NCBI GenBank assembly: GCA_964247055.1
Contig: OZ176057.1
Location: forward strand, 4,898,001-4,962,000
Reading direction: 5' to 3'
From: Paragordius varius
Lineage: Eukaryota > Animalia > Nematomorpha
DNA length: 64,000 nucleotides
Shown: positions 24,240 to 58,448 of the stretch, in pieces
Position numbering within the stretch: the first letter of the stretch is position 1
Layout: each line of letters starts with the position of its first letter
The notes under the pieces: generated by a model
Databases searched by the model: none
What the model saw: only the letters and a program-made list of their open reading frames with translations
Told to the model about the DNA's origin: nothing
Program-made: the position numbers and the translations under genes

Positions 24240-25000
24240 CTTTAAACTACTGTAACCACATATGTATTTTTTGGCAGTCCAGTCCTCTTATACCCATAAA
24301 AAACTGCGTTTGCACTGCGTTACTGATTTTATACCTTATTTGTAATTTTAAATTTTATAAAATATACATACTCAAACCCTTTCCCGCTTTGACCATATAA
24401 TTGTGGAAACCATGGGCATGATTGACTTTGTGCAATAAAAAACCAAAAATTAGCCCAGGTTTTTTCTGGAAGAATGGCTTCGAAACTAATATAGTTCAAT
24501 GATAGCGTAAAGCAAGGGCCTAATTAAAGGCTAATTTAAAAAAACCGTTTGACTTAAATTTTTGCCTTTCTACTGATAATATTTCAGGCATTTATTTTTT
24601 TATATGGCCTGATAAATATTCTGAAATTTAGCCCCAAAGGCGCACTATTTCGATATGACCGTCAGTTTTTAGCGGTTATCTGTTTACCCGGCAGCCAAAC
24701 GCACGACTAATTTTTTGCCTTTTCACAAGAAATCCTCATTGAATTTTTACGGTCTCATACCTTGGACAAAATTAGATACAAAAATTATTTTTGTGGACTT
24801 GTTTTTTTAAAAAATGGCATTTTACGGGGTAAGCGGGTAAAAAGAGGGCCTAAATTAAAAAAGCGAGCCGACTATGTCGCAATCGAAAAAAGTAAAGAAA
24901 ATCATATTCGAAATCGAATTGTCCAACACGATTTACGGAAACAGATCAAAAACCCAGCCTTTTCCATTTTTATAAATATATTATAACAGAATGAGAATTC
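24240..25000 (+). repeat. GC-richer unclassified dispersed repeat (family G)
   Basis: Near-identical block aaaattatttttgtggact...gcgggtaaaaagagggcctaaattaaaaa also present in reverse at 36300-37280. Confidence 0.75.
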
Positions 25001-32453: not shown

Positions 32454-33110
32454 ATTAAATCAATTAAACTAAGGACTAGGAAAGGCCGACTCGACAAAAT
32501 ATGTTCAGGTGGATTTGTTTCAAAAAAGTAATATACTGATTTTTTTAAGCACTGTCCGGCAAAAATGGGATATAAAAATACAGTAAAAATTGAAATTAAA
32601 CGGACAAAACGTAAAAATATAAATAAAAATATTTTTTTCAAAAGGCAACTATACTTTTTTGAATCTAAATTTTCATCCCTAATAATTTATTATGTTACCA
32701 TATAAATCTCCACCTCATATATTAAAATCTTAGACACTATTTTATATTTAAAAATCAATTATAAAATATGGTTGTCTTTTGGAAAAAATATTTGTTTTTA
32801 CATTTTTAGGGTTTGTGCGTAATTTTTTTTTACTTTATGTGGTTATCAATCACTTATTATAACTAAAATCTTTAAAGTAATTCATATGTGGGTCTTAATT
32901 TGAAAAAATATTTTTACTTATCTATCAGCAAAAAACATGTTTTAAGCGAAAAGACTCAATCTAATTTTTATTTTTTAATATGTATCCATAAGGTTAATCT
33001 TAGATGCAATCTATTATATTATTTAATATATAAGGAATGTCTTAAACACACATAAAATGCTATTGCAGAAAATTCTATAGTTTAAAAACATTTTAGAAAG
33101 TTTACATTAA

Positions 33111-35992: not shown

Positions 35993-38337
35993 TCAAAATA
36001 GCCAAAACAGCTTTTTTGTCTCGTTTTTAGGGGTCCTGCTTATCTCATATCCATGTGTGGTGACTAGAAGAACAAAACAATTAAGAATTGTTTTGGTTGG
36101 AAATCATACACTTTTATTTTCCGTATCATAAATAAGTTGGATCTTTTATAGCATGATGTGGAAACATATGATGTAGCGCCATGATATAATAGATTCATCT
36201 TTTTATTTTATTCCTAAAGAAAATTTCAAGATATAGAATAGTAACTTCTTAATAATACTAATTTTTAAATTATATTCTTGTATATTGATGTGTATTCTTT
36301 TGCCTAGTTTTTTATTTTTTGCTTGCATCTTAAATTTAAAGTAATATAATCTATATATTCATAAAAATGGAAAATGCTGGCTTTGTGATCTGTTTCCTGT
36401 AAACCAGTATATTCATTCAAAGCATGCCGAAAAAATATAATCATTAATGAATGCCCCGACAATAGCTTCGCCCTTTTTTGAATTAGGCCCCCAGTTCGGG
36501 TCCACCCCGTGAAACGGTTTTCTTGAAAATACAAGTTCACAAAAATCGTGTCTTGGAGACAATGGAAAACGTGTTGGATCATTCGATTCAAATATATATT
36601 TTTTTTACTTATTTTCGATCGCATTTTTAATTTAGGCCCTCTTTTTACCCGCACCCCCCGTATGCCATTTTTTTCAAAAAAACAGTCCACAAAAATAATT
36701 TTTTGAATCTCTTTTTCCCCCAGGGTAGGAGATTGTAAAAACTTAATGAGGACTCCAGCTCTTACCTGTTAAAAGGCAAACGTTTTAGTGGTGCATGTTT
36801 TTTATATTGGATGCTGGATAAGGAGATACCCACTTAAAACTGCTCCGTCATATCAAAATTGCGCTAAATTTCAGGAAACCTGTCAGGCCATATGAGTTCA
36901 ATAGCTGGCTTAAAATATTACCCGCAACTAGGAAAAAAGTTAGGTCATACGGTTTTTTTAAATTAGCCGTGCTATAGGCCCTTCACGCCCTGAAAAGGCG
37001 CCACCATAGAATGATTTTATAATTTTGTGGCAATTTTTCCAAAAACTAATGAGAGCATATGGAATCAATCATGATTACAGGTAATTTCCGTAAAAAGGCA
37101 AAAATTTTGATCAAGCGCTATTTTGTATCAGCCTCTGGGCAGGGAGCTACCGCCTAAAACTGCGCCACCAATCGAAATTGCGTTGTTTGTGAGTTATTTT
37201 TCAAAAACTTATCAAGCTACATAAGTTTAATAAGGGCCTGAAATATTACCCGTAAAAAGGTAAAAATGAGCGGTTTTTTTAAATAAGTAGTTTAATATAC
37301 TATAATTCTTAATTCATCGAAAATTGACAAAACTTATATAATTATATATATGTATACTTTTTGATATATGCGGATAGTTAAGAGGGAGGGCGATTTCAAA
37401 CAACGCCCATTTTTTTATTGTCAAAAAAATAGTTATTCTATTTAATGTGGTTAACGAATAATTTTTAAGTTGGTTGCTAATGTTCGATATTAACAGATAC
37501 AGGTTATAATTAAAAAAGAAATGGATAGATTGTACCCAGATATATTGAGTTTAACGGAGACTAAGCAAAATTGTAGCGCTAAAACACACGAAAAATATCC
37601 ATTGTTAAGATTGGGGAGAGATGACCAAAAATCAGAAGGAATTCCAGTATTAAATACCTAATTAAATAAAATTTTCCATTAGTAATAATATACACTCAGA
37701 GTTATGAGTATCAGGCTGAATACTAAACCACTTAAATTGACATACATAGTAGTCTATGCTCCTACGCAAATGCTCATAAAGAGGACATACAATTTTATGC
37801 CAAACTGCAAATAGTTTTGAATGAAGCGAAGAAAGGAGATGTGATTATCGTAGGTGGTGATTGGAACAGCAAAGTTGATAGAGGTAAGGTAGATTATACT
37901 GGCCATATGGAATGGGAGAAAACACGATGGGGTCTGTCCTGGGAATCAAATTCACCATATACCTGGTACATTACTAATCGGAATATTTAGATTTAATTAT
38001 ATTTTTTTATCATCGATTTCGGTGAGCATATATCAAAAACCTTATCTGGAAGATCTAAGCTTTTAGAAAAAGAGTATTTTTCATTCGCAGTTACTGTCAT
38101 AAATTGCTCCCTTAAAATTAGACTACCCATAAAATACATATTTTTTTATAGAACATCCACTAGATATTTTTGTGCCGGATCTACCTTGAAATGGAATTTT
38201 GAATTCCGTAAATTTCGTAGTGCTTTTATACTACGGTTTGAGCCATCATTTTAATAATATCGATAATTCTAAATAAATATTTATTTACAAATAGTATTTT
38301 CTGAGGTGCGACAACAATCCTTTGAGTAATTTCAACC

Positions 38338-38368
<31 letters not shown>

Positions 38369-41300
38369 TCGATTTAAAAACCAATTAAGCAAAATTTAAT
38401 TAAATATTTATCCCTTTATGTTATATCCTTAACCTGACATTCTAGGTAGGGAGTTTGGTATTGGAGGTGATATAACGCCATTTACAGCAAACATTTAAAA
38501 TAATACAGTAAAATTTGAAATTATGCATACAAAATGTAAAAACATAAAAGACAAGTAATTTTTCAATTGGCGGCTCTACCTTTTTAACCATGGTATTTGC
38601 TCTAAACTGCAAATCAAGAAATCAATCAACTATATATTTTACAATTGTTATAAAATATTTTAGGGAGAAATCAAGATTCAAAAAGGTATGGTCTTTTGGT
38701 AAAGTGTATATTTATTTAAAGTTTATAAAAAACAAAAAAAAGAAAAAAATGGCTGACACGAATTGGTAGTTAGATTGTGTCTTTTATTTAATTTTAAAAT
38801 TTGTTAATAAAATACGACAACATTGAAAATTGCTAGTAGTGAAAAATATAGTATATAATATAAGGATTTAGATGAATTAAAAGTTAAATAAAAGTATTAA
38901 TTCATGCAATTTGTTTTATATGTTTATTTAAATACTTTTTTTGTAAACTTTTTATCGTAAATATTTACTAAATAATAAATGTAATATTTTAGGATCTAAA
39001 TCAGATTTGATTACATTTATATAGTAGTGTCAAAATTCGAATTAAAATTTATTCAAAAAATTTAGTTAAATATCTAATTTATCTGATAGGATTTAGGGTA
39101 CTTTACATTTGGAACAATAAATCCCAAAAAATTTTCATATGGGTCATATAAAAAATTTTATGTTAGTTATTAAAATATTATATAATAAAATATAATATAT
39201 AATACAAATGAAAAAGTTGTGCGCCTCTCATATGATATATCAAAATATAAAACTATACAATTTTTGAACTTTTAAATTTAGATTTATCTTTTATTTTAAA
39301 AATTGAAATTGGCATAATTTCTAATACCCAAGCACTCCAGTGCTCAAAAAATGGGCTTGACCGAAGCACTAATATTTTAACTTTTTTTATGTCGAATCGT
39401 TGTGTAAATAGTGTTTTAGTTATGAAATATAAAATAGTCTTGGAAAGCTGGTATAAACAATTTCGTGCCTTAATAGTTTTTAAGTATTATAAAGTAGATG
39501 TTTTAATATAATGCAAACATTTGAAATTTAAATAAATAATTTCATTAAAATTATAATTAAAACCTATATTTTCTAATTTGATTTTTCAATAAAAATCCAA
39601 ACTAATAATATGGAATGGTTTCCATTTATCCATGCAAATTGTGGTAAAAAAATTATTTTAAATGTTAGAGATGTAAAATGATCATATGTTACTTTTGTAG
39701 TTAAACTTAAAGCCTTAGAATTGAGCCTTTTTATAGAGATTAGAAAATTATTGCCTATGTTGTAATAAGTAAATTATAATAGGGCTCATATCCTATTAGG
39801 AAAATTTGAGAGTTTTGTTTTTAAAAAAAAATAACAAAATTTTTATAATTAACGCCCGAGACCCTTAAATTAGACACCTCTGATTAAACTTTTGAATATT
39901 AATTAAAAAAATTAATCACTCATGAATCCGCCTCCACATTATAATTTACTTTTAATATTGTCAGTATCAAATAAATTCCTGACGTTGCCTTGATTAAAAT
40001 TTTTGTTACGTTGAGTAAGTACACATTGATAGAAAGTTATTAATTTTTGCCAAATAGCATATAAAGGGCAGTTATTGGCTTATAGTTATTTTTTTCATTT
40101 TTACTATTAGCCCATAATTTCTTGCTGCATATTCTATTTGGCAATAATTAATAACTTTCTAGCAATATATACTTACTTGTGCTGTATAACTATTCGCATA
40201 TAACCACATTTTAGAGAATATACAATATGCATATTAATGTTGCTTATTTCACACTTAATAAGGCTTAACACAGTAGTGTATGGAAAAAACAACAAATTTG
40301 AATAAAATGAACAAAGTAATGTAAGAAAGGAAAAAATATTAATTCAACTTGTTTTTTTCATACTGTGTTGCAAATTGCCCAACTCTAGTGTGAAATAAGC
40401 AACCATTAAAATGCATATTGAAATTCTCTCTCCTATTCAATATAACAAAAAAATTTCCAAAAATTTTGATAAAATGTAGAAATATTACGTCTAGGAGGTG
40501 GAACTGTTCGCAAGGGTGGTATAGCTGTAGGACCTATTTTTATATATAATATATTTGAGATATTTGATGGTAATCATGTTTTGGGGTTGAAATATTGTAA
40601 GAAAATATTATATCTGGAGAGAGAGACTATCAGTATCTACAAAAAAGCACTTATATGGGTAGTTTTATATCCCAGAACAATTCGAAATTAGAATTAAGGT
40701 GATAAACTGACAATATATGCCTTCAGCAATTTAGTTTTACAACTAAAAATGTAAAATTGCTTCTCAAACTTTTGTGCATTTGTAATTAAATTTAACTAAA
40801 ATAACTTTCAAAATTATAGTTTATATACAAAACTGAGCTCTGGGATACAAAACTACCCCAATATTAAAAAACAGTCTTAATAACACGTTAAATATCATTG
40901 CGACGTTTATGAATTTTTTGCGAAATCTTTTATAAACGAGGTCCTTTTCGTCTGTGACATTTATTGGATAAAAAAATTTGGATCTTTGAAAATCAAACCT
41001 TGTTCTCATGTATAATTTAAAAAAGCTTATATTTCCATTTTTTCTAAAATACAAAATTGCGGCAGCTTCTAAACACGATTAAAACGAACAGTTGAAAACA
41101 CATTTTAGGTAGTATCTGCATTTTAATGTTGCTTATTTCACACTATAATAGGGCAATTTGCACATAATGTATGGAAATCCTGAACAAAATGAACAAAATA
41201 ATGTAAGAAAGGATAAAAATGTTAATTCAACATTGTGTTTTTCATACTTTTTTGCAAATTGCCCAACTCTAGTGTGAAACAAGAAACCATTAAAATGCAA

Positions 41301-42783
41301 ACTGTAATTCTCTCCCCCATTTATATAAAACCAAAAATAAATTTCCAAAAATCTTGATAAAAAAACCTACTTATAGAAATAATACGTCTAGGAGGTGGAG
41401 ATGTTGACAAGGGTGGTATAACTCTAGGACCTATTTCTATATATAATATATTCGATATATTTGATGATAATATGTTTTGGGTTGAAATATTGTAAGAAAA
41501 TATTATATCTGGAGAGAGAGAGAGACTATCAGTTTCTACAAAAAAGCATTTAGGAGTTTTAATAAAATTGTGTAGTTGAGTGTATTATTATCATACATTT
41601 TTCTATCTCGCACTGAAATCGATTGGTTATAATTAAATTTAATATTTAAGTCTAAAAATATTAAGGCTTAAGTTTTCACATTTTATTTTTAAATTTATGT
41701 GCCATAACAAATTTGATTTTGGTTAATTAATGAATATATGAAATAAGTTAGCTTTCTGTGAAAAGTTAACACTTCATTACCTTTTGAGGTAGATATCCCA
41801 GAACGATTTAAAATTTGAATATCTTAAAAATATAAGGTAATAAACAAACCTAGGATTTCTTTAGCCTTTTAGGCGCGTTATACGATTTTTTTAAATGTAA
41901 ATTTGCAAAATAATCCTAATCTCAAACTTTTGTGCCGCCATTGTTTTTTATATTTTTTTCAATCATAATGCAACAATAAAATAAATTTATAATTAATAAT
42001 AGATGTGATATATTTTGTTTTATATCAGCTGTTCGTTACAATCGTGTTTTAGACTTTATAAAAGTCAAAATACTGTATATTGCCTAAAATAACTTTCAAA
42101 ACTATAGTTTGGATTAAAAATCAGCCATAAATTACCCCCTACTATGTGAAATGGTTATAAAGTGTTAATAACACGTTAAATATCTTGTCTCATTATATAT
42201 CTATATAGTCATTGAACAAATTGAAATTATTATTTGAAAAATACAACTTTAAATAAGTATAAAAATTTGTTTTAAGCATTTAAAGCAATATGCATATTAA
42301 TCTTTTTAAATACGGCATTGACATATATTGGATTAAAAAAAATTTTGATCTTTGAAAGTCAAACATTGTTCTCTAGTATTAGTTAAAAAGGGTTATATTT
42401 TTTCCAGTTTTGCATATTTAAAATTCAATTTTGGGCAGCTTCAAAACACGATTAAAACGAGCAGCTGATATTAAAACCATAATAAAGCAGGTTTTTGCTG
42501 GTTTTACCCTAAAAGCTTCTTAAAATTAATTATATATATTCTCTAACCATATAATACATTTATGCCTGTTTCATAAAAACATTCAAAAAAATAAAAAAAT
42601 GGCAACAAAAAGTTTGATATGTTAATTTTTTACAATTTTACATTTTTTTTATAAAAATTTATATAATCCGCCTAAAAGGCTAAAAGAAAGCATATTAAAT
42701 GGGGCTAATAACTTGAATACTTAAGATATTGAAATTATCGTTTGGGACATATAGCCAAAAAGGTAATGGAGTTTTATTAACAT

Positions 42784-42816
<33 letters not shown>

Positions 42817-44052
42817 TATATTTAATACAAAAATTTATATAATATCCTAAAATAGATATGCTATATTAAAGCTTAAATTTTAATTGGTAGAAATTGGAGG
42901 AAATAACACTAATTGGATTATGAGTTATGAGCGTTAAATAAATAAAATTAAACTTTAAATATATATTATGATATTTTACATGTCCAGAATATAATTATTA
43001 AATTTTATATTTATATACCATTTAGAGTTCAAATTGTCCTAAAAACCATTAGTGTATTTAATTAATATAAATCATTGAAGCCGAGTATACTTATCAGTAT
43101 TTTGATTTAAATGAAATTTCATTTTACAAAAATATATAAAATATAGGTAATCTTAAAACACACATAATTTATTTGAGGGTGAATTTGAATTGTTCAAGGG
43201 TGAATTTAAATGGATAATGATATATTAATAATATTTGATAAAAAAATGATATTAATTTGTATATTTTTTATTAATCGGCTTATTTTAGAAAGGGTCGGTC
43301 CATTGTGCAAATAATTTTGTTAAAAGACCCATTTTTTTGTTAAAAATAATATATTTGCAAATTTATAATTCTTTTTTGTATTCCTATCATCTAAAAACTA
43401 CCTGAAAAAGAGATTCTTCGTGAAGGTCGTGTAGTTGAGAGTGGTAAAATAGCTGTCCACAGGTATAAAAAAAATTAAATTAACAACGTAAAAATATTGG
43501 AAAACTTTTTTTCAATAATAAAATTATTTTGATTTTTGTTTACTCCTTGGTTTTACTGGGAGCCGTGGTTTTGAAGTCGTTTTTGGTGGTTCTATAAAAA
43601 ATACAGTAAAATTTAAAATTATACGGACAAAACGTAAAATTTAAAAATAAATATTTTTTTTAGAAAAAAACCATACTTTTAAACCCTACTATTCTTGTAT
43701 AAGCTATTTAGTTACAATATATAAAATTGTTTGATTATAAATTGTTTTTAATTTAACTAAAACATTTTGTTCATGGTGACTATACCATTGAAAATTGATA
43801 AATATTTATAGTACCTAATATTTGACATTCATCAATTTATAAAATGAAATTAGACCTTAAATTAATGGTTATAGGATTTAGCATATAAAATATATGTATA
43901 TGCCGGCGTTCCCATATGAATGATATAAGTCCATAAATGCTTAACATATTTTTTCCTAAATTTGTTTAATTTTTTTTATATTATTTCTAAATTTTTTAAA
44001 AAGAATAACTTCGTTCAGCTTAGATAGGCAAACATAAAATATTTTTATGTTT

Positions 44053-44091
<39 letters not shown>

Positions 44092-47000
44092 CAATGAAGA
44101 TATAAAAATATTTCATAAAATAATTTTTTCAAATCGTTTAATTATTATTTGTGCATCTCAAAATCACATGTTTTAAAAGAGCATGTTGGAAAGCCAATGT
44201 GCAAATACCGTTTTTAGACAAAACAAATGCTTTATTCCTGAATTCTTGTTGGAAAATTTTTAATAAATTTTAAGGTTTTTTTACGATTTGTCCTTTGCAT
44301 TTTAAACGCATATTTTTACATTATCAATGTCGAAGCTTATTCCTGAGTAAATTAGAAATTATATTTTATTATTAATGAATAAGTATTAGTATATTACACA
44401 AATAGCCGGCTCTGCTTAAAATTTATTTTAAGTTAATTTTCTTTATGTGCAAAGATATCCCAAAATTTTTCGGATTCTAAAAGCTGGGTTACCCTCAAAA
44501 TATGACAAATTAAATAAAGCTTTTGACACCAAATTTTGCAAACTATGATCCATACAATGTAAATTTTTAAATATTTTCCCACAAATACATTCATAAAATA
44601 AATTTAATTAATCTGCTTTTAATGATAATACCATATATATCGATAAACTTGTAAAAGTATATTTAAAAAAATCTTTTAAAATCTGCTTTATATTTTATGT
44701 GTTCATCGACATATTAATTAAAAAATTGCATAATCATTACATATATATATTCATTCCTTTGAGTAATATAATAAATGTACTCTTTTCTAATGCACCTTCC
44801 TCAAAGGCATAGCTATATAGGGGGAAAGGGGGCTGATGCACCAGGCGCCATAGTTGAAGGGGCGCCGAATTTTAAATAATTATTAATTTTATTTCAAAAA
44901 ATAGATATTTAAAAGTTTGATATAAAATCATCCATTTATGAGTGATCATGACCACGGTTAAAATTTAATTAATTTTTTATAATCCAAGGGGTCGCATGGA
45001 CGGGAGGGAGTGCTAGAAATGCAAGCAACACTTCTGCACTTCCTTTCTTTTATTCTTAAATGCTACGAATTCCCAATAGAAATTTTATATATCGACAAAC
45101 GTATTATACACCATATCGGAACAAACTCTAAACAAGTGCATGGTCAAACCTCACTTTGTTAAAAAACTAAAATGTTTTTGGATTCCGATATTTTTTTAAA
45201 CTATTAGCGGCATTAAATAAATATTATGGAATCTCGTAGATTGTAAATCATTTAAAATATAGATGAGAATCAGTGAAAATGGATTTAATGATGCTTAAAA
45301 AATGTATAATATTTTAAATAATAAATATATCATTTAAACCTTAAATTCAGCCTCAAACAATTAATTTGCCCTAAAATAAATTATGTGTTGTGAAACTTGA
45401 AAACTATATTTTACAACCTTAAAAAATTGTCATTAAATTATTATAATACAAATAAATAAACTATGACATAAAGATATATTTTATATTAATGATGAATTAT
45501 ATTAATCCGAAAACACAAATTTATTTTTAGGAAAATTCAAATTGTTGAAGGGTGATATTTTAATTATTAGAGGAATTTGAATTGCAATGGTGCAATACAA
45601 ACGCAGTAATCTCTTTATTATTGGTCAATCACAGACCTATTGAAAACACACAGTAGTGCAGAGTATGCATATTTTGCCCATAATCAAACATGCACACATT
45701 TAATGTTCATAGGAAGCAAACAATTGTTTAACATTCCAGTACCTTTTGGGGTAGTTTTATATCCCAAAGCGATTCTAAATTTGAAAATCTTAAATAGTTA
45801 AGCTATTAAGTTAAATTCAAAAAATGTTTAAAAAAATTCGAAAAAATAAAATTTTAAATAATCCACATCCAAACTTTTTTGCCGCCATTTCTATATATTT
45901 TTTTTAGAAAATGTAAATAATTAACTAAAATTTAAGGCTACATTTTACCGGCAAAACTCGAAATATATATCAGCTGTTCATTTCGGTCGTGTTATGGAGA
46001 AAATTCTAGCAGTCACAAAACTGTAAAAAATATAAGCTTTTTTATTTAATATATGAGTAAAATGTTTGATGATTGATTTTAACTAATTAAACTTCCAAAA
46101 CTGTTTATTTGCAAAATAGAGCTGTGTGATATAAAACTACCCCAAAAGGTAAACTAGGACAAAAGTCAAAACTTATGGAAATGCTAATTAAACTCATTTG
46201 TTGTTTTTTTTACTCATGCGTAACTGTATTGCCAATGGGTTAAATTTTGTAGCGGCCAACAATTAAGTAGGAACACTGTATATAAATTTAATATACGGAT
46301 GAAAAAAATCGAATATATGCATATGCTTTGAATAGCGATATTTATTCTATTAACGAATTTCATCAGTATTAAATATGTAAATACTGTATTAAAATATTTT
46401 TATATTATTATAAATTACTTAAAGGATGTCGCAAGTTTATTTGCGGCAAAAGCGTTGAGACAGACTTCACTAACGAAAGAAAGATGTCATTTATATTATT
46501 GTAAAAAATTTCATTTAAAATGGTATTTTTTGCTTTTTATGGATGTATATATATATATATATAAAGGAATTTAAAAAATTTTTTGGCACAGTTATCTTAG
46601 GGCCCTCTAATGACTTTTAGTCTACTCAAAATTTGCCCATGTGAATTGGACTTGCAAATAAGCCGGCATAGAGTATACCTTGAACACCTACTATTACGTT
46701 TTGGTATTTTTATAGCCCTCACAAATGGTAGCCTAAAATATTTCACATTAAACTTTTGAAATTTTCAGCACAAACAGCATTTGCTCAAGCAAATGCAACA
46801 TTTTTTCAACCAAACGCCATATTTTTCAAGCAATGACAACATATTTTCAAGCAAATGCAACATTTTATCAAGCAAAGACTAAAATATTCAAGCAAAAGCA
46901 ACATTTTCAACCAAATGCAACATTTTTTCATTTAAACAAAATTAAAAATATTGTTTCTTGTTGAGTTAAGTTAAAAATTGTTGCTTGAAAAAACTTTTTG

Positions 47001-47274
47001 CTTGAAGTAATTTTGTTTTTGCTTAAAAAAATGTTGTCTTTGCTTGAAAAATGGGGCGTTTGATTGAAAAAATGTTGTTTTTTGGTTTATTAACAAACTA
47101 ACTCGATCATTTCGCAAAGGTCTTAAGTACTCTGTAATTTTTGTGCTTATATATTTTTTTACATGAATCAATATTTCATATGGGCTCAAATAATTTACCA
47201 GAATTATAGAAATTATAAAGAGTTTTATATATAATACCTGGTGGTATTGGCTTGAGGGGACCTAGAAATATATA

Positions 47275-47306
<32 letters not shown>

Positions 47307-50300
47307 CAAGTATATTATATATACAGATATTTATTTTGACAATTATGTTTGAAATAATGATTTTAAATTAAAATTTTAATCATGTAGACTTTATAATTAA
47401 ATAATTATTAGGATTAAACGTATATAAATTGAGTTGACACATCAAAGGCAATTTTCTTCTTACTAAATAAATGCCATAATATTTCGATAAATAATTTCAC
47501 ACTCTGGTATTTTAATATGCTACGTAATTAATTTATAATTAATATAAAAATGATCCAATATTATATTTTATTAATTAAAATAAAAACCTAAAATATTGCG
47601 CCATATTTATTATAATTGTTATAATTTACATCCAAAGATCCAAATATAGGCTTTAATATTAACAATTTACAAAAGTTTGGGAATTGAATAAAACTTATTA
47701 TACCGGTAAAAAACGTAAAAATATAAAGACAATTTTTTAAGGACAACCCCTTACCTTTTCAAACCTTAATTTGTCCTAGAAAATTTGTTCAAAATATTTT
47801 CGTAAATACATTGATTGTGTTAATAATTTACAACTTTATTTTATAACAATGAGGTATAATACAAAATAATTAAGTTTAAAACATATAATTGTTTAGGAAA
47901 AAAAAATTTGTATTTATATTTTTACTTTTTGTCTGTATATCCATTTTTACTGTATATTTCTACCCCGTTAGTTAGGAGAGATGTATGAGGAAATAACTAT
48001 AACATTAGTAGCTTAATAATCAATAAATTTAAAAATATATGTTTTAAAGTTTATCGCTAAGTTATAAAGCGATCCTACTATTTTGAATTCGTATACTTTT
48101 TTAAAACTAAAAAATAGATATTAAAGATATGTTAAGGGACGTATTTGTTTCAGCCCTGAATAAGATTTATTATACTATAGGAATATATATAATATTGTGT
48201 TTAAATAGAATATTATTCTGTCTATTCCCATTACTAATTAGAGGATAATTTATGTAAAGGGACATTGTATAAATGCCAATATTACCAAATTTTACATTAA
48301 AAATAGAAATTTACGGACCAAATATAAAGATATAAATACAAATATTACTTTCTAAAAGACCATTATACTTTTTAAATCTTGATTTAATTAAATAAAACTT
48401 ATTATCAGTAATTGTTACGTATGGAATAGAGATGCATATAGGTAACATAATTAAACATATTTTACAATTTTTATTAAATTGTTTATTTTATAGGAAAAAA
48501 TAAGAAAATATGGTTTTCTTTTGAAAATATATTTGTCTATATTATTTTCTAGGTGTTGTCCTCGTATAATTTAAATTTTTACTGTACATTCTTTTAAAAT
48601 TTAATTTTAGATATCTGATGCTTTCTATTTTTCATAAATTAAACGCAACAATAATTAATGTTCTCGGCCATTATTATATTGCAAAATAATATTTCATCTA
48701 AAGTTTTACAGTAAAAATTAAAATTATATACCATTTACAGTTCAAATTCACCCTTAAACAATTCAAATTCACCCTCGAACAATTCAAATTCACCCTTGAA
48801 CAATTCAAATTCACCCTCGAACAATTCAAATTCACCTTCAAATAAATAACATGTTTTTTAAGATTAAAAATTACCTATATTTTAATATATTTTAAAAAAA
48901 TAAAATTTTGTTTTAAATTAAAATAATACTGAAAAAAATAATTAATTATGCCATAAAGGTATATTTTATATTAATAATGAGTTATATTAGTTCGAAAACA
49001 CATAATTTATTTTTAGGGTGAATTATGTTCTAGGGTGAATTTGAATTGTTCAAGGGTGAATTTGAATTGTTTAAGGGTGAATTTGAACTGTAAATGGTAT
49101 ATTAAGGACAAAAGGTAAAATTATAAAGACAAACTTTCTAAAGACACCCTTTTAAATTCTTTATTAATATAACTACTCATTGTTTAATATGGCAAAGTGT
49201 AGAGATTACTAGTAAAATCAATTCTATATCCTTTAATTGTAACTAAGTAGCTAATGTAGGAATAATATGGTTATCATAAAAATATTTATCTTGATATTTT
49301 TACATTTTGTTCGTATAATTATAATTTTTTTTGTTTGATAAATAACAGATGATTGAAAAGGTGCGTTTTCAGAAATTATTTTTCAGATTCTAAATGCTGA
49401 AGCCACAAAGTTTCGTATTCGAAATCATAAAAATTATTTTTACCTTAAATTTACACGATGTTAAGCACATTATCATAATATTAAAACAATTTTTTTGATT
49501 TTTTAATTTTATTTTTGACTATGGTGTTTTAAAGGCTCTGGATAAGGAATCTGTATTGCTATTTAATATCATCACAAATTTTATTTTGTAAAAAATCATT
49601 TTAATTGATAAAATAATAATTATGGAGGTCTATAAATAGACTTAACATAACTTAAAAAACAAATTGATGATAGTGTGACTAAATCATAATTATTAATATT
49701 AATATAATTTAATATTTTACACTACAGTTTATTATTTCAAATTCACCCTTAACACTCCATTACCCTTTGGGATATTTTATATATCAGAGGGATTCGAAAT
49801 TCGAATGCTTAAAAATAAGGTATTAAGCCGAATTTAAAATTATGCTTTCTTTAGCCTAGGCGTAAATACAAATTTTTTTAAAAAATTTTAAATTTTAATA
49901 AAATCCTCATCTCTAACTCTTTTTCCTCTATATTTTTTTTAAATTTTTTTAAAATGCTTATGTAACAGGGAAATAATTGTATATCATGGTTAGAACATGT
50001 ATTAATTTAACTTAAAAAAGTGTTAATTTTAATATCGGCTGTTTGTTTCAATCGTGTTTGTCCCAATTTTATAGAAGTCACAAAACTATAAAAACTTTTT
50101 AACTAATACATGATAACTATGTTTGATAATTAAATTATTAAAAACTGTAGAATATTTACAATTTGAGCTCTGGGTTTTAAAACTACTAAAGGTAAACTAA
50201 GACATAAAAGTAAGGTAATAGAGTGTTATACATTTTGAATTTACACCAATAATTGTGTTTGAGCTAATCTAAATATTATATCATTATTTTATTTATTATA

Positions 50301-53300
50301 AGCAAATTTATATAGTAAAATATCAAAAAATATAGTAATTTTTGTCACAAAACATATTTTATTTTTACAGTGATTTTGTTTATTGAAGTATACATTTTAC
50401 AAAAAATATATATAGGGTGTAACATTTTTATGCCCTAAAATTAGGTCCAAAATCTATAAATTTCTTTAAATGGCACAAATATTTGGAAAAGGGTATTTTA
50501 TAACTAAACAAAAAAAGTTAGCTTAAATTATGATAATTAACTACTTTTTACTTAACACTTCATTACCTTTTCGCTTTTTGTCTTAGTTTACCTGAGGTAG
50601 TTTTATATCTAGAGCTCCATTTTGTAGTTAAACTAGAGTTTTAAAAGTTATTTTAATTATTATTAAAATATTGTTCTTAAGATTTAGATAGAAAGGCTTA
50701 TATTTTTTACAGTTTTGTGAATTTTACAGTCTAAAATTGGGCACTAGTCACAAGATTAAAACGAATAGCGGATATTAAAGTTAGTATAAACCTTTGACTC
50801 GTAAAATGTAGCCTGAAAGCTATCAAAAATAATTATTTACATTGTTTAACCAAAATATACAGTTTTTGCCTGTTGCAATAGCTATTTAAAATATAGAAAA
50901 AAATGAAAGTTTGAGATCTGTATTTTTTTACAATTTATCATATTTCACAAAAAAATTTTTTTTATATAATGCAAAGTCTATAAAGCATATTTTTTAATGT
51001 CTTATTGTCTTTAACATTTTAAGATATACAATTTTAAAATATAAAACTACCCTCCCCCCCCCCCCCCCCCCAAAAAAAAAGTAATGGAATCATTGAAGGA
51101 AAGTTTGGTTTGATAAAATGGTTTTTAGTTTATCAAAACATCATTTCATTTTTGTCAATATCATTATAATTTATTGATATATGTCTAAAAATATAATTTT
51201 TTACCTGAAGGCGTAGGATTTGTATATCGCACTGTATAAGGCGGTGTTGCTACAAAATAATATATAGAAAGTATATTTACAATAAAAGTTTAAAGCTATT
51301 TTTTATACAAGCTACCTTATTTTTGACCCTTAATTTTTTTAATAGAGTAGCTATTGTTTTTTGGTTACAGAAGAGGGAATAGAGATGTAAGTTGTTTTCA
51401 TTTATTATTGCCAAATAGCATATACCGCAAAGGGCAATATTATTGGCATATAGATATTTTTTCATTGTTTACTAAGCAGACTTGCGAAAAAAATTGTATT
51501 TAGTTTTTACATTTTTTCCGTATAATTTTAATATTAATGCAAATATTTTCAAAGTCATATAATATTTTGTTTAAAATTCCGAATAGTATATACAAAATAT
51601 TTTATATATACCTGGTTGAGGTGGAATATGCTTCGTATAATGCGTATTCCATGGCATTAAAACTAAAAAATGGATTAAATGACATAAAATTATTTGTGAT
51701 AAAGAAATTTTTTTGCAAAAATGGTAATATTTAAAATAGCTGTGATTTGGACCAACTCTAATATTCTTCTATGGCATTGTAACAGTATTTTTCGAAAAAC
51801 ATACAATTGAAATTATAACAAAACGTAAAAATATAAAGACAAATATTTTACTTAAATACAACCATACTTTTTTATCTCAAATTCTTTAAATATAAATCAT
51901 TGTTTCAAAATTCAAAGAGTAGAATAGGGATGTGTATTGGTAACACAATCAATCACATATTTCACGATTGTTATTAAATGATTTTAAAGCATTAATTAAG
52001 GCTTGTGGGTTGTCTTTGAAAAAAAAATGTCTTCATTCTACATTTTGTCCGTATAAATTCATTTTTTACTATATATTATATTTATATTTATATAATAAAA
52101 AATAAAAAGAGTTAAAGTATTTATCTAATTTAAAAATCAATTGGCTTTTTAATACAGGCGAAATTTGAAAAAAAACTCAAACTTATATCAAGTTTTCGTT
52201 CTATATACAAATTTAACCTTATTTAAAAATAAATTTTATAAAAAAATGTTAAAAAAAATCAACATACCAAAAGGGTTTGGAGATGGATACCAGGAATTAC
52301 CCCCATAATTGTTTGGGTAATAGCGCCCTTTATATTTTTCATGCTTATATCGTGAACTTTTTGTTTTAGTTTTTGCTTTTAGTTTTCGATTTATTTTGTT
52401 CAGAACTTCTGCAAATTCTATTTTTATTTATCAATGGAAATAATTAAATGAGAAAATATGTTTAATAATTAAATATATTTCTTTTAAAATTAAATTTTAG
52501 GGGCTTCGTCAGCATGAGGGGTGTGGATCATGAGTTGAGGGTGGATACATAGATGCCTAAATATATAATAATTGAAGGCAAACAGTAAAAATTGAAATTA
52601 TACGGACAAAAGGTAAAAATATAAAGACAAATATCTTTTTTCAAAAAACAACCATACTTTTTAAATCTTAATTTTTTTGAAATATAACTAGTAGTGGTAG
52701 ATATATATAAATTTGATATTTTACCATCGTTATGGTATAGCTTATAGAAAAAAAATTAGTGTTTGAAAATGGTTGTCTTTTGGAAAACAATATTTGTCTT
52801 TATAGTTTTACGTATTGCCCGTATAATTTCAAATTTTCCTGTAAAGTTTTTTTTTGAAAAAAATAAGGATGATATAAAAAACATATATAAATGTTGCTAA
52901 ATCACCCATATGGCTTCGTTTGTCCTCTTGATGGCGAGTGGCTGAAAAAAAAATAATTTACTAACCCTAGAGAGTAAGTATACTTTGCTAGAAAGTTATT
53001 AATCATTGCTAAATAGCCTATACTGCAGCAAAGAGAATTATTTTGGCTCATAATAGTAAAAAGTGAATAAAATAACTATAAGCCAATAATACTGCCCTTT
53101 GTTTCATATACTATTTGGCAATAATTAATAACTTTCTAGCAATGTATACTTACTCATACTGTAGATTAGAACTATAAATAAAATGTTGTATTTTTATATA
53201 TTTTAATGTTTTGTTTTTCATTTTTTAAGTTAAATTTAATAATTAATTACTTAAATACTTTTTTTGATTCAAACCCAAATCGTTTCTCTTTAAATCCAAA

Positions 53301-53973
53301 AATCAAACAATTTTAAGACCAATTAATTCCATATCGATATACAGATTGTTGCGGTGACTACTTATATCACGATGCGTAGCTAAAAATAAATGTTAATTAA
53401 TAATATATCATTCGATAGTTTAAGGCTTCAAGATAATGAATATCGAAATGATATATGCGGTTAAAATACAAAAAATTATTTTAATATTTATGTTATTGGC
53501 CAAAATTAGAAAAATCGCATTTTAATAGAATATTATGTTAAATTAAATACAATAAATGAAAACATTTCAACTAAACAAATATAGCATAAGGATAATTCAA
53601 AGCGCAAATTTTATCAAAAAAGATTTTACTTTTTTTCGGAAGGTCCGAGAAAGATTTATAAATTATTAAACTTAAAAAGACAATTTTTTAAAAAAGCATA
53701 CTTTGTTAAGCTTTTAATTGAAAATACTATTGAATATATAAATGATTTTGTTGTTAATTTACATATGTTGGTACTTTGCAATTATAAACATGGAAGTTTC
53801 AAATACGTTTGAAAATGCAGTTTTGAAAACAATATTTGTCTTTTGGTTATTATGCCATTTGTATAAAATCAATTTTTTATATATATTAATCAAGAGTTTA
53901 ACACATCTTAGCAGGCCGCATTTGAAATATATATGGGCACATATAAAAAATTTATTACCTTTCAAACATAAGA
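35993..53973 (-). CDS. Putative micro-exon gene encoding a Pro/Ser/Thr/basic low-complexity protein (first exon not identified; last exon tentative)
   Basis: Collinear AG...GT-bounded, 3n-length, phase 1-1, stop-free exons: 53973-53959, 52941-52906, 52417-52268, 51662-51612, 51249-51205, 49558-49520 (weaker), 47261-47238, 46469-46419, 43591-43544, 43452-43402, 41430-41386 and 40533-40489. Candidate terminal exon 36063-35993. Confidence 0.7.
36300..37280 (-). repeat. Family G repeat, inverted relative to 24240-25000
   Basis: See above; internal modular repeats (gggcctaatt, aaatattacccg). Confidence 0.75.
37470..37975 (+). mobile_element. LINE (RTE-like) AP-endonuclease relic
   Basis: DILSLTETK...RVMSIRLNTKPLKLTYIVVYAPT...VIIVGGDWNSKV. 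Confidence 0.85.
40489..40533 (-). CDS. 45-nt phase 1-1 exon, duplicate copy (xPTAIPPLRTVPPPR)
   Basis: aaaatag|gt cct aca ... cct aga c|gtaata. Confidence 0.7.
41386..41430 (-). CDS. 45-nt phase 1-1 exon, duplicate copy (xPRVIPPLSTSPPPR)
   Basis: gaaatag|gt cct aga ... cct aga c|gtatta. Confidence 0.7.
41766..42168 (+). mobile_element. TTAA-CACTT MITE family J
   Basis: TTAA|CACTTCATTACC ... AAAGTG|TTAA; related copies at 45728-46190, 49749-50230, 50552-51095, 42300-42780 (reverse), fragment near 62380-62640. Confidence 0.75.
43014..43216. mobile_element. Degenerate MITE family A
   Basis: tataccatttagagttcaaatt ... gagggtgaatttgaattgttcaagggtgaatt. Confidence 0.75.
43402..43452 (-). CDS. 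51-nt phase 1-1 exon (xILPLSTTRPSRRISFS)
   Basis: ggacag|ct att tta ... ttt tca g|gtagtt; separated from the previous exon by a 91-nt intron. Confidence 0.65.
43544..43591 (-). CDS. 48-nt phase 1-1 exon (xPPKTTSKPRLPVKPR)
   Basis: tttttatag|aa cca cca ... cca agg a|gtaaac. Confidence 0.7.
45326..45592. mobile_element. Highly degenerate MITE family A
   Basis: Internal sequence similar to other A copies; eroded termini. Confidence 0.6.
46419..46469 (-). CDS. 51-nt phase 1-1 exon (xKSVSTLLPQINLRHPL)
   Basis: ctttctttcgttag|tg aag tct ... cct tta a|gtaatt. Confidence 0.65.
46777..47085. repeat. Family F inverted arms without clear termini
   Basis: ttttcaagcaaatgcaaca units at 46780-46930, inverted units at 46975-47080. 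Confidence 0.75.
47238..47261 (-). CDS. 24-nt phase 1-1 micro-exon (xPLKPIPP)
   Basis: tttctag|gt ccc ctc aag cca ata cca cca g|gtatta. Confidence 0.7.
48727..49101. mobile_element. MITE family A (near-consensus) nested in the left arm of a family B MITE
   Basis: Perfect TATACCATTTACAGTTCAAATTCACCCTTAAACAATTCAAATTCACCC inverted termini. Confidence 0.93.
49520..49558 (-). CDS. 39-nt candidate phase 1-1 exon (xIQIPYPEPLKHH)
   Basis: aaatag|ca ata cag att cct tat cca gag cct tta aaa cac cat a|gtcaaa; the donor is weaker than the others. Confidence 0.45.
51205..51249 (-). CDS. 45-nt phase 1-1 exon (xTPPYTVRYTNPTPS)
   Basis: ttattttgtag|ca aca ccg ... cct tca g|gtaaaa. Confidence 0.72.
51612..51662 (-). 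CDS. 51-nt phase 1-1 exon (xLMPWNTHYTKHIPPQP)
   Basis: ttttttag|tt tta atg ... caa cca g|gtatat. Confidence 0.72.
52268..52417 (-). CDS. 150-nt phase 1-1 exon (xFAEVLNKINRKLKAKTKTKSSRYKHEKYKGRYYPNNYGGNSWYPSPNPF)
   Basis: aaaatag| 49 open codons g|gtatgt; strong donor. Confidence 0.75.
52583..52843. mobile_element. MITE family B, representative copy; TA-CAGT termini, Tc1/mariner-like
   Basis: About 80-bp TIR cagtaaaaattgaaattatacggacaaaa...gacaaccatactttt. Many other full or partial copies, e.g. 1307-1570, 10908-11170, 18805-19035, 32578-32830, 47700-47955, 48300-48590, 51805-52070, 57325-57590, 59064-59268. Confidence 0.85.
52906..52941 (-). CDS. 36-nt exon (xTRHQEDKRSHM in phase 1; open in all three frames)
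   Basis: ttttttttcag|cc act cgc cat caa gag gac aaa cga agc cat atg g|gtgatt. Confidence 0.62.
52975..53163. mobile_element. MITE family L (TACAGTATGAGTAAGTA termini)
   Basis: Palindromic arms gagtaagtatactttgctagaaagttatt / aataactttctagcaatgtatacttactc; similar copies near 40015-40195, 51330-51470, 19200-19410, 7310-7400. Confidence 0.72.
53959..53973 (-). CDS. 15-nt micro-exon (xLCLK)
   Basis: tttcgtag|tc tta tgt ttg aaa g|gtaata. Confidence 0.5.
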
Positions 53974-53996
53974 CTACGAAATGAAAAAACGGAATG

Positions 53997-55476
53997 TATA
54001 CCATTTTTCATGCAAAAACATAATTTTTTCAACCAAATGCAACATTTTTTCAACCAAACTCAACATTTTTTCAAGCAAATGCAACATTTTTTCAAGCAAA
54101 GACAACATTTTTTCGAGCAAACTCAACATTTTTTCAAGCAAACGCAACATTTTTTCAAGCAAAGACAACATTTTTTCGAGCAAACGCAACATTTTTTCAA
54201 GCAAAGACAACAATTTTTCAATCAAACGCAACATTTTTTCAAGCAAAGACAACAATTTTTCAAGCAAACGCAACATTTTTTCAAGCAAAGACAAAATTTT
54301 TTCATCCAAACGCAACATTTTTTCAAGCAAAAACAACAATTTTTTTTAAAAAAAAAACCATTTTCTTTATCTTAAGATATAAATTTAAAGTTAATGTAAA
54401 TTAATTTTAAACTAGAATTATGATATTTATTGTTTTATCATCAATATTTGATGGTAAGATTGATTTTCAACATTTTAATTTAGCCCATAAATTGCATTAT
54501 TTATTTATATTAATATTTTTTTCTTTTACAACATAAGTTTCACCTAAATCTATAGTGCGCTTCAAGATTGTTTTTTTAAATTTAAATTTAGTCCTAGAAT
54601 TCAAGTTGATCCTTCAATATTTTAATTTTGATTTTAACGTTTATTTATGAGGCAATAAAATATTCATTATTCAATCATTTAAACCTAATTTTTATATTTA
54701 ACCTAAACCTTTAAGTGAATCCATTTCTTTCATAAGAACCGTATATCCTTATTATTCTCTATAAATTAATATTAAAAAATATCTACGTTTTGTGGGTTAT
54801 TGAGGTAATATCTAGTTTAAAACAATAATTCATTTATAATATTGATAAATTAATGAAAATTTTCAAACAAAGTTGTTTTACTATGAAAATATTAATTTTG
54901 ATTCAAAAACTAATAAATAGAGATATTAGTTTAAATTAAAAATAGATAATTACACACAAAAATAACGGTTGTATGGAAACTGCAAAAAATGTAAGGAATT
55001 TTAAGCGAGGGATAACTTTAAATTTTTAAAGAGAGTCTTAAAGCTCAAATTTGATTGATATAAAAAATATTTATAAATAAATAATGCAATTTAAGGGCTA
55101 AATTGAAATGTTTGAAAATCAATCATACCAAATATTGATGATAAAACAATAAAAATCATAATTCTAGTTTAAAATTAGTTTACATTAACTTTAAATTTAT
55201 GTTTTAAAATAAAGAAAATGGTTTTTTATTTTAAAAAAATTGTTGTTTTTGCTTGAAAAAATGTTGTCGTTGGTTGAAAAAATGTTTCGTTTGGATGAAA
55301 AAATGTTGTCCTTGGTTGAAAAAATGTTGTCTTTGCTTGAAAAAATGTTGCGTTTGCTCGAAAAAATGTTGTCTTTGCTTGAAAAAATGTGCGTTTGCTT
55401 GAAAAAATGTTGAGTTTGGTTAAAAAAATGTTGCATTTGGTTGAAAAAATGATGTTTTTGCATAAAAAATGGTATA
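53997..55476. mobile_element. Foldback-type element (family F), 1480 bp, long inverted arms built of 21-bp tandem repeats
   Basis: Ends TATACCATTTT...AAAATGGTATA; unit ttttttcaagcaaacgcaaca repeated at 54010-54350 and inverted at 55220-55460; the non-repetitive inverted arm continues to about 54486 / 55095. Confidence 0.88.
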
Positions 55477-56730: not shown

Positions 56731-58448
56731 TATATATATAGCTCTTAGTTTCCAAATTTAAATATTAAACAGTATCTAAGAAATATTTGGTGAGTAAAAA
56801 TGACTAAGGATTATTACCACTACTCTACATTTTTATAAACAAATTAACTATACTTTTTATTTGGCCTAGAGTTACTTTTTGCGTTTCTTTATATTTAATT
56901 AGAATAGCGCTTAGGCGCAAAACTATCCCAAAAGATTATGAATTTTGCTTTTAATATAATTGGTGTGTATTTTAATAAAAAAATAGTGAGAATATGGTAG
57001 CATAAGCTTTTTGACTTCAATTTAACTGAAACATTTTTATCCTTTACCAATAATTCATTTAATAATATCAAACAGTGGCGTAATTAGAGGGCGGGTGCAA
57101 GAAATGCCAGCTACGCCTGAAACTATAATAAAATACCTTTAGGCGTTTCAAAATGCAAGTCTTTAATTTTTGTAAAATAAGTATTTCCATTTAACAAAAA
57201 ATTATTGCGTTAACAAATGCAGAATCATATAATTTATTTGGATATAATTGTAGGAGAGTATATTTTTTATCTATTGCGATTCTCAATAGGATGATTACAA
57301 AATATTCGAACGATATTACTAACTACGGTAAAAATTCACATTATACGGACAAAATGTAAAAATATGAAGATAAATATTTTTTGCAAAAGACAACCACACT
57401 TTTTAATTCCTAATTTTTCCAATATAAATTATTTAATTACAATCGTAAAATATATAATTGATTGTTTACCATAATACATCGCTTATTCATATACCTTGCA
57501 TTTTTAAACAAGCATTTATATTTTTAAAAAGTTATTAAGAAAAAAATATTTGCCTTTATATTACGTTTTGTCCGCATAACAATTTTTACTAATTAACGTT
57601 CTTATTTTTTTAGCCAAATTAAAAATAATGAATTCTACGGAAATTTAGAATAAAAATATCAAAAATGGAAATATAATGTTATTATTGATAAAATATATTA
57701 GTAATTCATAAAATACTGCATAAAAAATAAAAATTTATACTTACATTAAATAATAAATCAAAAGTTTTATGCCAATAAATTGAGCTAATTAAGTTACAAA
57801 ATTATAGTTTAAACCCTAGAAAAAATCAAACATTTTTTGTCTAATATTGCATTATGTGTTTTTAATAAAATATTAATTAAAAGGTGTAAGAATATAAAAA
57901 AAATTATTAAAAAAATTTTTAAAAATATAATTTAAATTTTAGGAGATAATAAAATATTTCATGTGAAATTTTTTTTAAATTAACCCCAATCATTAAATAG
58001 TATTAGTTAGTACCTACCTGCATCTCGAATATGATGTCAATAAACTTATGTCAAAATTATCACATAAAAGAAAAAAAATTGTGATATACGTGTAAGCCTA
58101 AAGGTCTAAAAAATAATAAATATTTAAAGGAGAGAATATTTTTAAAATTTTTTACTCATAATATATATATACAATATGGAATTTGCAGAATATTTAAGGC
58201 CTGAGGGATCATTAATTATGGGAACATTGTATTAAATCAAAAAAGATTTTTAAAGAAATATAAAATGAAATACAGTAAAAATCGTAATTATACGGACACA
58301 ACGGAATAATATAACGATAAATATTTTTTTCTAAAAGGCAGGCAACCATACTTTTTGAACCTTTATTTTTCCTGTATAATATAATACATAATTGATAGTG
58401 TGACTAATTTGCGTCGCTATTTAATACTGGCATTGTAAAACCATGAGT

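Follow-up and report, generated by a model that had tools for sequence, protein, structure and literature searches.

Elastin, a disordered extracellular protein, is encoded by a gene of 1-1 symmetric exons and is spliced mostly constitutively, with some cassette use. Exons of this symmetry, with a codon split after its first base (phase 1) at either end, are general in genes for disordered extracellular proteins, including constitutively spliced ones (PMC3632108). In flatworm micro-exon genes (MEGs), the exons measure 6–81 nt, most of them about 15 nt, and the introns between them 0.1–5 kb (PMC10526429), and for these genes a signal peptide has been proven and gland expression and exon skipping have been documented (PMC10526429; PMC5825161). 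In the bicycle genes of aphids, internal exons are small and nearly all start at codon position 2, and the encoded proteins, which are salivary-gland products, have signal peptides and paired Cys-Tyr-Cys (CYC) motifs (PMC9168663). In the literature searched, no paper was found that links Nematomorpha with micro-exon genes. The locus described here lies in a 64,000-nucleotide stretch of the nematomorph Paragordius varius (assembly GCA_964247055.1, contig OZ176057.1, positions 4,898,001 to 4,962,000; hereafter the window, with all positions counted from its first letter). As a whole it is probably best explained as a minus-strand gene at 54004–40433, with about 12 phase-1 exons (E1 to E12) and an orphan, basic, Pro-rich product.

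Schistosome and other flatworm MEGs (PMC10526429; PMC5825161) resemble this locus in being strings of 10–20 short exons with lengths divisible by three (3n) and introns of 0.1–5 kb, in having small, orphan, fast-evolving products that contain Pro and Lys, in being hard for automatic annotation and in growing by duplication. They differ from it in exon size, the median here being 48–51 nt with one exon of 150 nt and only two of 36 nt or less, in their proven signal peptide, where this locus has a 15-residue hydrophobic candidate start, in belonging to another phylum and in sharing no sequence similarity with it. Two exons longer than 81 nt make up 36% of the coding sequence (CDS), which places the locus outside the MEGs when these are defined by very short exons, while under a looser definition of micro-exons (51 nt or less; PMC6600660) 9 of the 12 exons qualify. 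The label of micro-exon gene, given to the locus in an original prediction made from the sequence alone, is apt for its symmetric 3n exons and long introns but not for the size of the exons (median about 50 nt).

With the bicycle and megacycle genes of aphids (PMC9168663) the locus has in common the same codon split, and these too are orphans found by gene structure and not by sequence; the CYC motif is however absent here, with 2 Cys in 233 residues. Elastin-like 1-1 symmetric genes share with it the 3n exons, the codon split after base 1, short low-complexity Pro-rich modules and tandem exon duplication. They are unrelated to it in sequence, and the product predicted here is smaller, strongly basic and without Gly/Val/Ala-rich hydrophobic or cross-linking domains. 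On these likenesses, the 1-1 symmetric-exon genes for disordered proteins are probably the closest working analogue. Since homologues were not found, an independent evolution of this gene design is plausible.

Exon geometry compared with chance

The window is very AT-rich, its GC content per 2 kb ranging from 0.21 to 0.33, and its part from 38 to 54 kb is devoid of open reading frames (ORFs) of 110 aa or more, save frames that run through a 21-bp tandem repeat. It is quite likely that the minus strand of this region carries a real, unannotated-looking protein-coding gene of small symmetric phase-1 exons. The original prediction had traced a chain of exons over 53973–35993; the chain was recovered, but its extent had to be redrawn to about 54004–40433, as exon-like pieces of this kind were not found in 35993–40430. 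In the full model a CDS of 702 nt runs from ATG to TAG through 12 exons of 46, 36, 150, 51, 45, 39 (doubtful), 24, 51, 48, 51, 60 and 101 nt, separated by introns of 91–2827 nt, and encodes 233 aa. All ten internal exons are 3n and phase 1-1, each beginning at codon base 2. Every intron would split a codon after its first base, and a short peptide module would be contributed by each exon, which would act as a frame-neutral cassette. We infer that the gene starts at the ATG at 54004 with a hydrophobic leader and ends in E12; constitutive or near-constitutive splicing would be the default assumption for it. A search for further exons upstream, at 54–64 kb, gave none that was convincing.

All 12 minus-strand islands listed in the original prediction were found in their places, preceded by TAG or CAG and followed by GT, 15–150 nt in length, 3n, and open when read as 2 nt, whole codons and 1 nt. 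The peptides quoted for them were all located on the minus strand, and the joined islands form an open frame of 600 nt. Their donors comprise 10 GTA, 1 GTG and 1 GTC, and 5 of the 12 are open in all three frames. The statement that nearly every small GC-enriched island of the region is bracketed by an AG and a GT proved too generous, with 9 of 19 such islands in 40.4–54 kb being exons and 10 of 19 not.

Islands of this general form are common. A loose criterion (AG...GT, 3n, open in phase 1, pyrimidine-rich upstream) was matched 0.4–1.4 times per kb on both strands, giving 81 and 54 matches on the two strands of the window. Among the GC-rich AG..GT islands of 40–54 kb on the minus strand, 13 of 22 had a 3n phase-1 reading, with 3–6 in each non-3n class. 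An equal density on the plus strand had been named in the original prediction as grounds for rejecting the gene; for the GC-rich islands of 40–54 kb the 3n phase-1 excess was seen on the minus strand and not on the plus strand.

In the claimed frame the exons have a GC content at the three codon positions (GC1/GC2/GC3) of 0.47/0.52/0.25, a distribution with a chi-square p of 3e-7 and with GC3 at the genomic background. In the same window, four long ORFs that belong to neighbouring genes and were used as a coding control have values of 0.36–0.42/0.27–0.40/0.24–0.25. Compared with 214 chance candidates, that is, pieces of the same formal kind as the predicted exons, the mean GC12-GC3 of the latter is 0.266 against 0.015 (sd 0.154; Mann-Whitney p 1.2e-4). 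A stringent filter was then defined as a length of at least 36 nt, a GC content of at least 0.38 and a GC12-GC3 of at least 0.2, and was applied to 18 classes of strand, phase and length. Within 40–54 kb the class of minus strand, phase 1 and 3n gave 5 matches and each of the other 17 classes gave 0–2; in the whole window this class had 6 matches, 5 of which lie inside the 14 kb. Splice features outside the selection filter also set the predicted exons apart from the chance candidates: a YAG acceptor was present in 10 of 10 (against 48%), a purine at donor position +3 in 9 of 10 (against 43%) and a G as last exon base in 5 of 10 (against 21%).

Exons of the predicted gene and their duplication

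Protein-level likeness between exons is seen at the 3' end of the predicted gene. E10 (43402–43452, minus strand; 51 nt, phase 1-1, donor CAG/GTAGTT, the slash marking the exon end), which is among the evidence from the stringent scan, is an older paralogue of E11 and E12. The peptides of E10 and E11, ILPLSTTRPSRRI and IPPLSTSPPPRRI, are identical at 9 of 13 residues; among composition-preserving shuffles this score was attained by 0 of 5000 in one test and by 1 of 2000 in another, and 7 of the 9 conserved residues are encoded by different codons. The proportion of synonymous differences (pS) is 0.79 against 0.24 for nonsynonymous ones (pN; Fisher p 1e-3), and 16 nucleotide changes placed randomly leave at least 9 identities with p 6e-4; this pair is, however, the best of 55 exon pairs and was protein-aligned, so that these p-values are weaker by about that factor. 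In the other two frames there are 2–3 identities in 12. E10 and E11 are adjacent in the exon chain, where a duplicate is expected.

E11 (41371–41430, minus strand) has the donor A/GTAGGT at 41370, which is the positional homologue of the E10 donor. It had been predicted as a 45-nt exon; its 3n phase-1 reading was upheld, but the end at 41386 has the weaker donor C/GTATTA and a better one lies 15 nt further, and E11 is on this sequence probably 60 nt long. E12 (40433–40533, minus strand; 101 nt) was likewise given 45 nt. The island at 40533–40489 is indeed present, but it probably does not end at 40489, reading on instead for 18 codons to a TAG stop at 40435–40433. From 40.4 kb down to 33 kb a search for periodic, Pro-rich islands found none following E12, which makes it the probable last exon. 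Duplicated copies of about 450 bp contain E11 and E12 (about 41560–41110 and 40665–40215, together 40215–41560, minus strand; 897 bp apart), each also holding a miniature inverted-repeat transposable element (MITE). Between the copies there are no indels in the exon and many in the flanks, and in the E12 copy a 9-nt gap takes out exactly the stretch with the GTAGGT donor of E11.

The comparison shows the predicted gene to have grown by duplication of frame-neutral exons, with E10 as an old copy whose likeness to E11 has been kept at the protein level and with E11 and E12 as a young pair. Being 3n and in phase 1, the exons could be duplicated each time with the frame left intact. With four independent tests in agreement, namely codon periodicity, the class-specific excess, splice features and protein-level conservation, we regard the core of the gene as real.

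Towards the 5' end, the putative first exon E1 (53959–54004, minus strand; 46 nt) has an ATG at 54004, 15 codons for mostly hydrophobic residues and one further nt, and the donor AAG/GTAATA. A 15-nt exon had been predicted at 53973–53959; this AG..GT 3n island exists and has no codon periodicity of its own, but is better read as the 3' part of E1 than as a separate exon. Signal-like phase-1 first exons with an ATG number 10 over the minus strand of the window; E1 is among them and is plausible as a first exon. E2 (52906–52941, minus strand; 36 nt, phase 1-1) has an acceptor with a strong T-run, the donor TGG/GTGATT and an in-frame ATG at its end. The largest exon, E3 (52268–52417, minus strand; 150 nt, phase 1-1, donor TTG/GTATGT), encodes a Lys-rich and then Tyr/Pro/Asn-rich segment, is open in the phase-1 frame only, has GC1/2/3 of 0.37/0.39/0.22, and has an alternative, frame-preserving AG 9 nt downstream of its acceptor. 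E4 (51612–51662, minus strand; 51 nt, phase 1-1) has the acceptor TTTTTTAG and the donor CAG/GTATAT, and E5 (51205–51249, minus strand; 45 nt, phase 1-1), which passed the stringent scan, has the acceptor TTTTGTAG and the donor CAG/GTAAAA.

In the middle of the chain, E7 (47238–47261, minus strand; 24 nt, phase 1-1, GC 0.58) is bounded by the acceptor TTTCTAG and the donor CAG/GTATTA, and E8 (46419–46469, minus strand; 51 nt, phase 1-1) by the good acceptor CTTTCTTTCGTTAG and the donor TAA/GTAATT. E9 (43544–43591, minus strand; 48 nt, phase 1-1, donor GGA/GTAAAC), also among the stringent-scan evidence, has its acceptor directly behind the end of a MITE; only 10 nt separate this end from the AG, and part of the polypyrimidine tract is thus supplied by the MITE.

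Repeats, other islands and surroundings

A MITE-like element of about 80–140 bp occurs in both orientations in more than 20 copies in the window, scattered in introns; copies lie at 52582–52858, 51807–51871, 48287–48595, 43590–43737, 38498–38563, 57321–57468 and 32574–32838, among others. The possibility that the exons themselves are parts of repeats was considered and rejected, as only flanks and introns match MITEs, the introns being crowded with copies.

An array of 21-bp tandem repeats lies directly upstream of E1 (54004–54349), with an inverted copy at about 55235–55476, about 900 bp apart, and related arrays are found at 46762–47087 (intron 7) and 2446–2588. The array and its inverted copy give rise to long spurious ORFs on both strands. 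The 21-bp arrays probably belong to a foldback or mobile element and not to the coding sequence. Short tandem arrays of a 16–17-bp unit (GGTGAATTTGAATTGTT-like) occur at 48740–48835 and 49040–49100, and also at 43180–43215; those in intron 6, inverted and about 200 bp apart, are the arms of another foldback-type element. At 51062–51081, intron 5 contains about 20 consecutive G (C on the plus strand), possibly an assembly or homopolymer feature.

Searches with Rfam and ARAGORN over 40000–49800 and 49950–54400 gave no RNA family or tRNA that would account for the islands. Unexplained unique islands lie at 44.78–45.05, 46.58–46.71, 52.49–52.56 and 53.34–53.38 kb, with no repeat match within the window. 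The intron of 2.8 kb that separates E8 from E9 contains the one at 44779–45051, which is richer in GC than any other in the region (reaching 0.67 over 45 nt) and has no splice-site brackets. The island at 52485–52564 in intron 2 (GC 0.60) follows directly after a MITE end, has a stop in phase 1 and is unique in the window.

The lower third of the interval first proposed (35993–40200) contains no exons of the gene. Its stretch at 36.3–38.0 kb has the highest GC content of the whole interval first proposed and includes a dispersed repeat: 36353–36983 and 24514–24981 are diverged inverted copies of a GC-rich element, with 71–90% identity. A reading of 37817–37990 on the plus strand as the remnant of a retrotransposon endonuclease was tried and abandoned, Pfam and PDB sequence searches giving it no support. 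On the minus strand at 25751–30711 there are several long Asn/Ser-rich ORFs (112–220 aa) resembling exons of one large gene; these served as the coding control mentioned above (GC3 0.24–0.25). The piece at 30373–30711 has Cys/His patterns, for which Pfam returned a sub-threshold DUF4187 match only.

Predicted product, transcripts and rival explanations

The predicted protein of 233 residues is basic (pI about 10.7; GRAVY -0.67) and is composed of 17.6% Pro, 16.3% Lys+Arg, 16.4% Ser+Thr, 5.6% Tyr and 3% acidic residues, which bears out the Pro/Ser/Thr-rich product originally proposed. Of its two Cys (0.9%), the leader and the tail have one each. The N-terminal half (E3–E6) is rich in Lys, Tyr, Pro and Asn, and the C-terminal half consists of Pro-Arg-Ser/Thr modules with a short, hydrophobic tail. 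Judged by its composition, the product would almost certainly be intrinsically disordered; the candidate leader at 54004 suggests that it is probably secreted, and it may serve outside the cell in a structural or adhesive-type role. The mucin-like character put forward as possible in the original prediction would likewise depend on this leader. A Pfam search for relatives of the product gave sub-threshold noise only, and a search of the ESM Atlas found no relatives, with a best score of 0.54. The predicted product is an orphan protein without detectable relatives.

Several observations weigh against a gene as modelled here. Because a phmmer search with the 49-aa peptide of E3 against 1.84 billion representatives gave 0 matches, no annotated protein in these libraries, not even one of this genome, contains this exon. 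Five runs of the species classed as 'RNA?' were sampled for words of the stretch with three exons and 0 carry them, the available RNA runs being few and small, and a further four runs of unlabelled kind (X1–X4), which are probably DNA runs, match intron and exon alike. E1 adjoins the 21-bp tandem repeat at its 5' end, and a start at the ATG ending E2, as an alternative to that at 54004, could give a basic protein without a leader. E2 is open in all three frames and E8 has no Pro-rich character; both have no codon periodicity of their own, and their support is moderate. E6 (49520–49558, minus strand; 39 nt) is a doubtful exon, with a purine-rich acceptor region and the non-consensus donor ATA/GTCAAA, and may be decayed or false; the frame is kept if it is skipped, and omission of any of the weak links E2, E6 and E8 likewise preserves it. 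Between E11 and E12, exon identity is 86.7% and that of the flanks 88–91%, with all 6 exon differences amino-acid-changing, as in a young pair without purifying selection.

How these points are to be read depends on the alternatives. That only a core is real, or that there are two genes, one of E3–E5 (Tyr/Lys-rich) and one of E7 and E9–E12 (Pro/Arg/Ser/Thr-rich), with the 15-nt piece or E1, E2, E6 and E8 as chance bridges, is possible but doubtful. It would account for the weak pieces without periodicity or good splice sites, in a region where 3n phase-1 islands are open by chance about 0.4–1.4 times per kb, and for the different composition of the halves, with gaps of 1.6–2.8 kb exactly around E6 and E8. 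It is difficult to reconcile, though, with the strand, phase and 3n rule common to both halves, which give an in-frame join, with the best polypyrimidine tracts of the set being those of E2 and E8, and with the minus strand between E5 and E9, where no signal-like ATG phase-1 first exon was found. At the other extreme, that all the pieces are pseudo-exons chosen by eye in AT-rich DNA is scarcely credible: alternative GTs were indeed chosen among in the original prediction, 5 of 12 pieces are open in three frames and the loose criterion gave 81 matches on one strand of the window and 54 on the other, but against it stand the minus-strand, phase-1, 3n excess, a periodicity absent from the 214 chance candidates, a 150-nt exon open in phase 1 only, and a protein likeness of E10 and E11 reached through different codons. 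A relic, that is, what was once such a gene but is now decaying or no longer expressed, keeping its coding imprint with no product today, is unlikely. Against it stand a 702-nt frame uninterrupted between ATG and stop over 12 pieces, in DNA whose GC content of 24% makes stops frequent, the strength of an imprint in which GC3 is at background and GC1/2 about double, and donors of GTA or GTG in 11 of 12 cases. The 'RNA?' runs without words of the locus and the largest exon being in no library protein would fit such a relic, although the RNA runs on hand are few and small, as would the crippled donor of E6, the evolution of the young E11/E12 pair at the pace of its flanks and the loss in E12 of the donor that E11 keeps.

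The original prediction in its full form, a fluke-type micro-exon gene whose cassettes are skipped in many combinations to yield a variable secreted protein, for example a parasite effector directed against the host, is quite unlikely. All internal exons being 3n and in phase 1, any could be dropped without a frameshift, but genes for disordered extracellular proteins that are spliced constitutively follow this symmetry as a rule too (PMC3632108), and combinatorial exon skipping, which was proposed from the symmetry of the frame, is in itself improbable. The exons are mostly 45–51 nt as opposed to the 15 nt or so typical of MEGs (PMC10526429), the signal peptide is a candidate only and the sampled exon words were in none of the five 'RNA?' runs, even though the orphan product would be in keeping with such a gene. 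That E11 and E12 differ at amino-acid-changing positions only, and slightly more than their flanks, would fit diversification; 6 of 6 nonsynonymous differences are however expected by chance at about 0.18 (0.75^6), are not significant and do not by themselves indicate positive selection, and a young exon copy under relaxed evolution would fit the pattern as well as one under diversifying evolution. A wider proposal, which we regard as a long shot, would place the locus in a large lineage-specific set of phase-1 micro-exon genes in a host-manipulating parasite, with cassettes whose skipping or duplication would vary a secreted Pro-rich protein in contact with the host, as a third independent invention of the MEG and bicycle type.

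In the old copy of E10 and E11 and in the young pair of E11 and E12, the locus directly displays how genes of frame-neutral exons grow. If transcripts confirm the predicted gene, an orphan gene would be added, of a sort that standard annotation probably misses.

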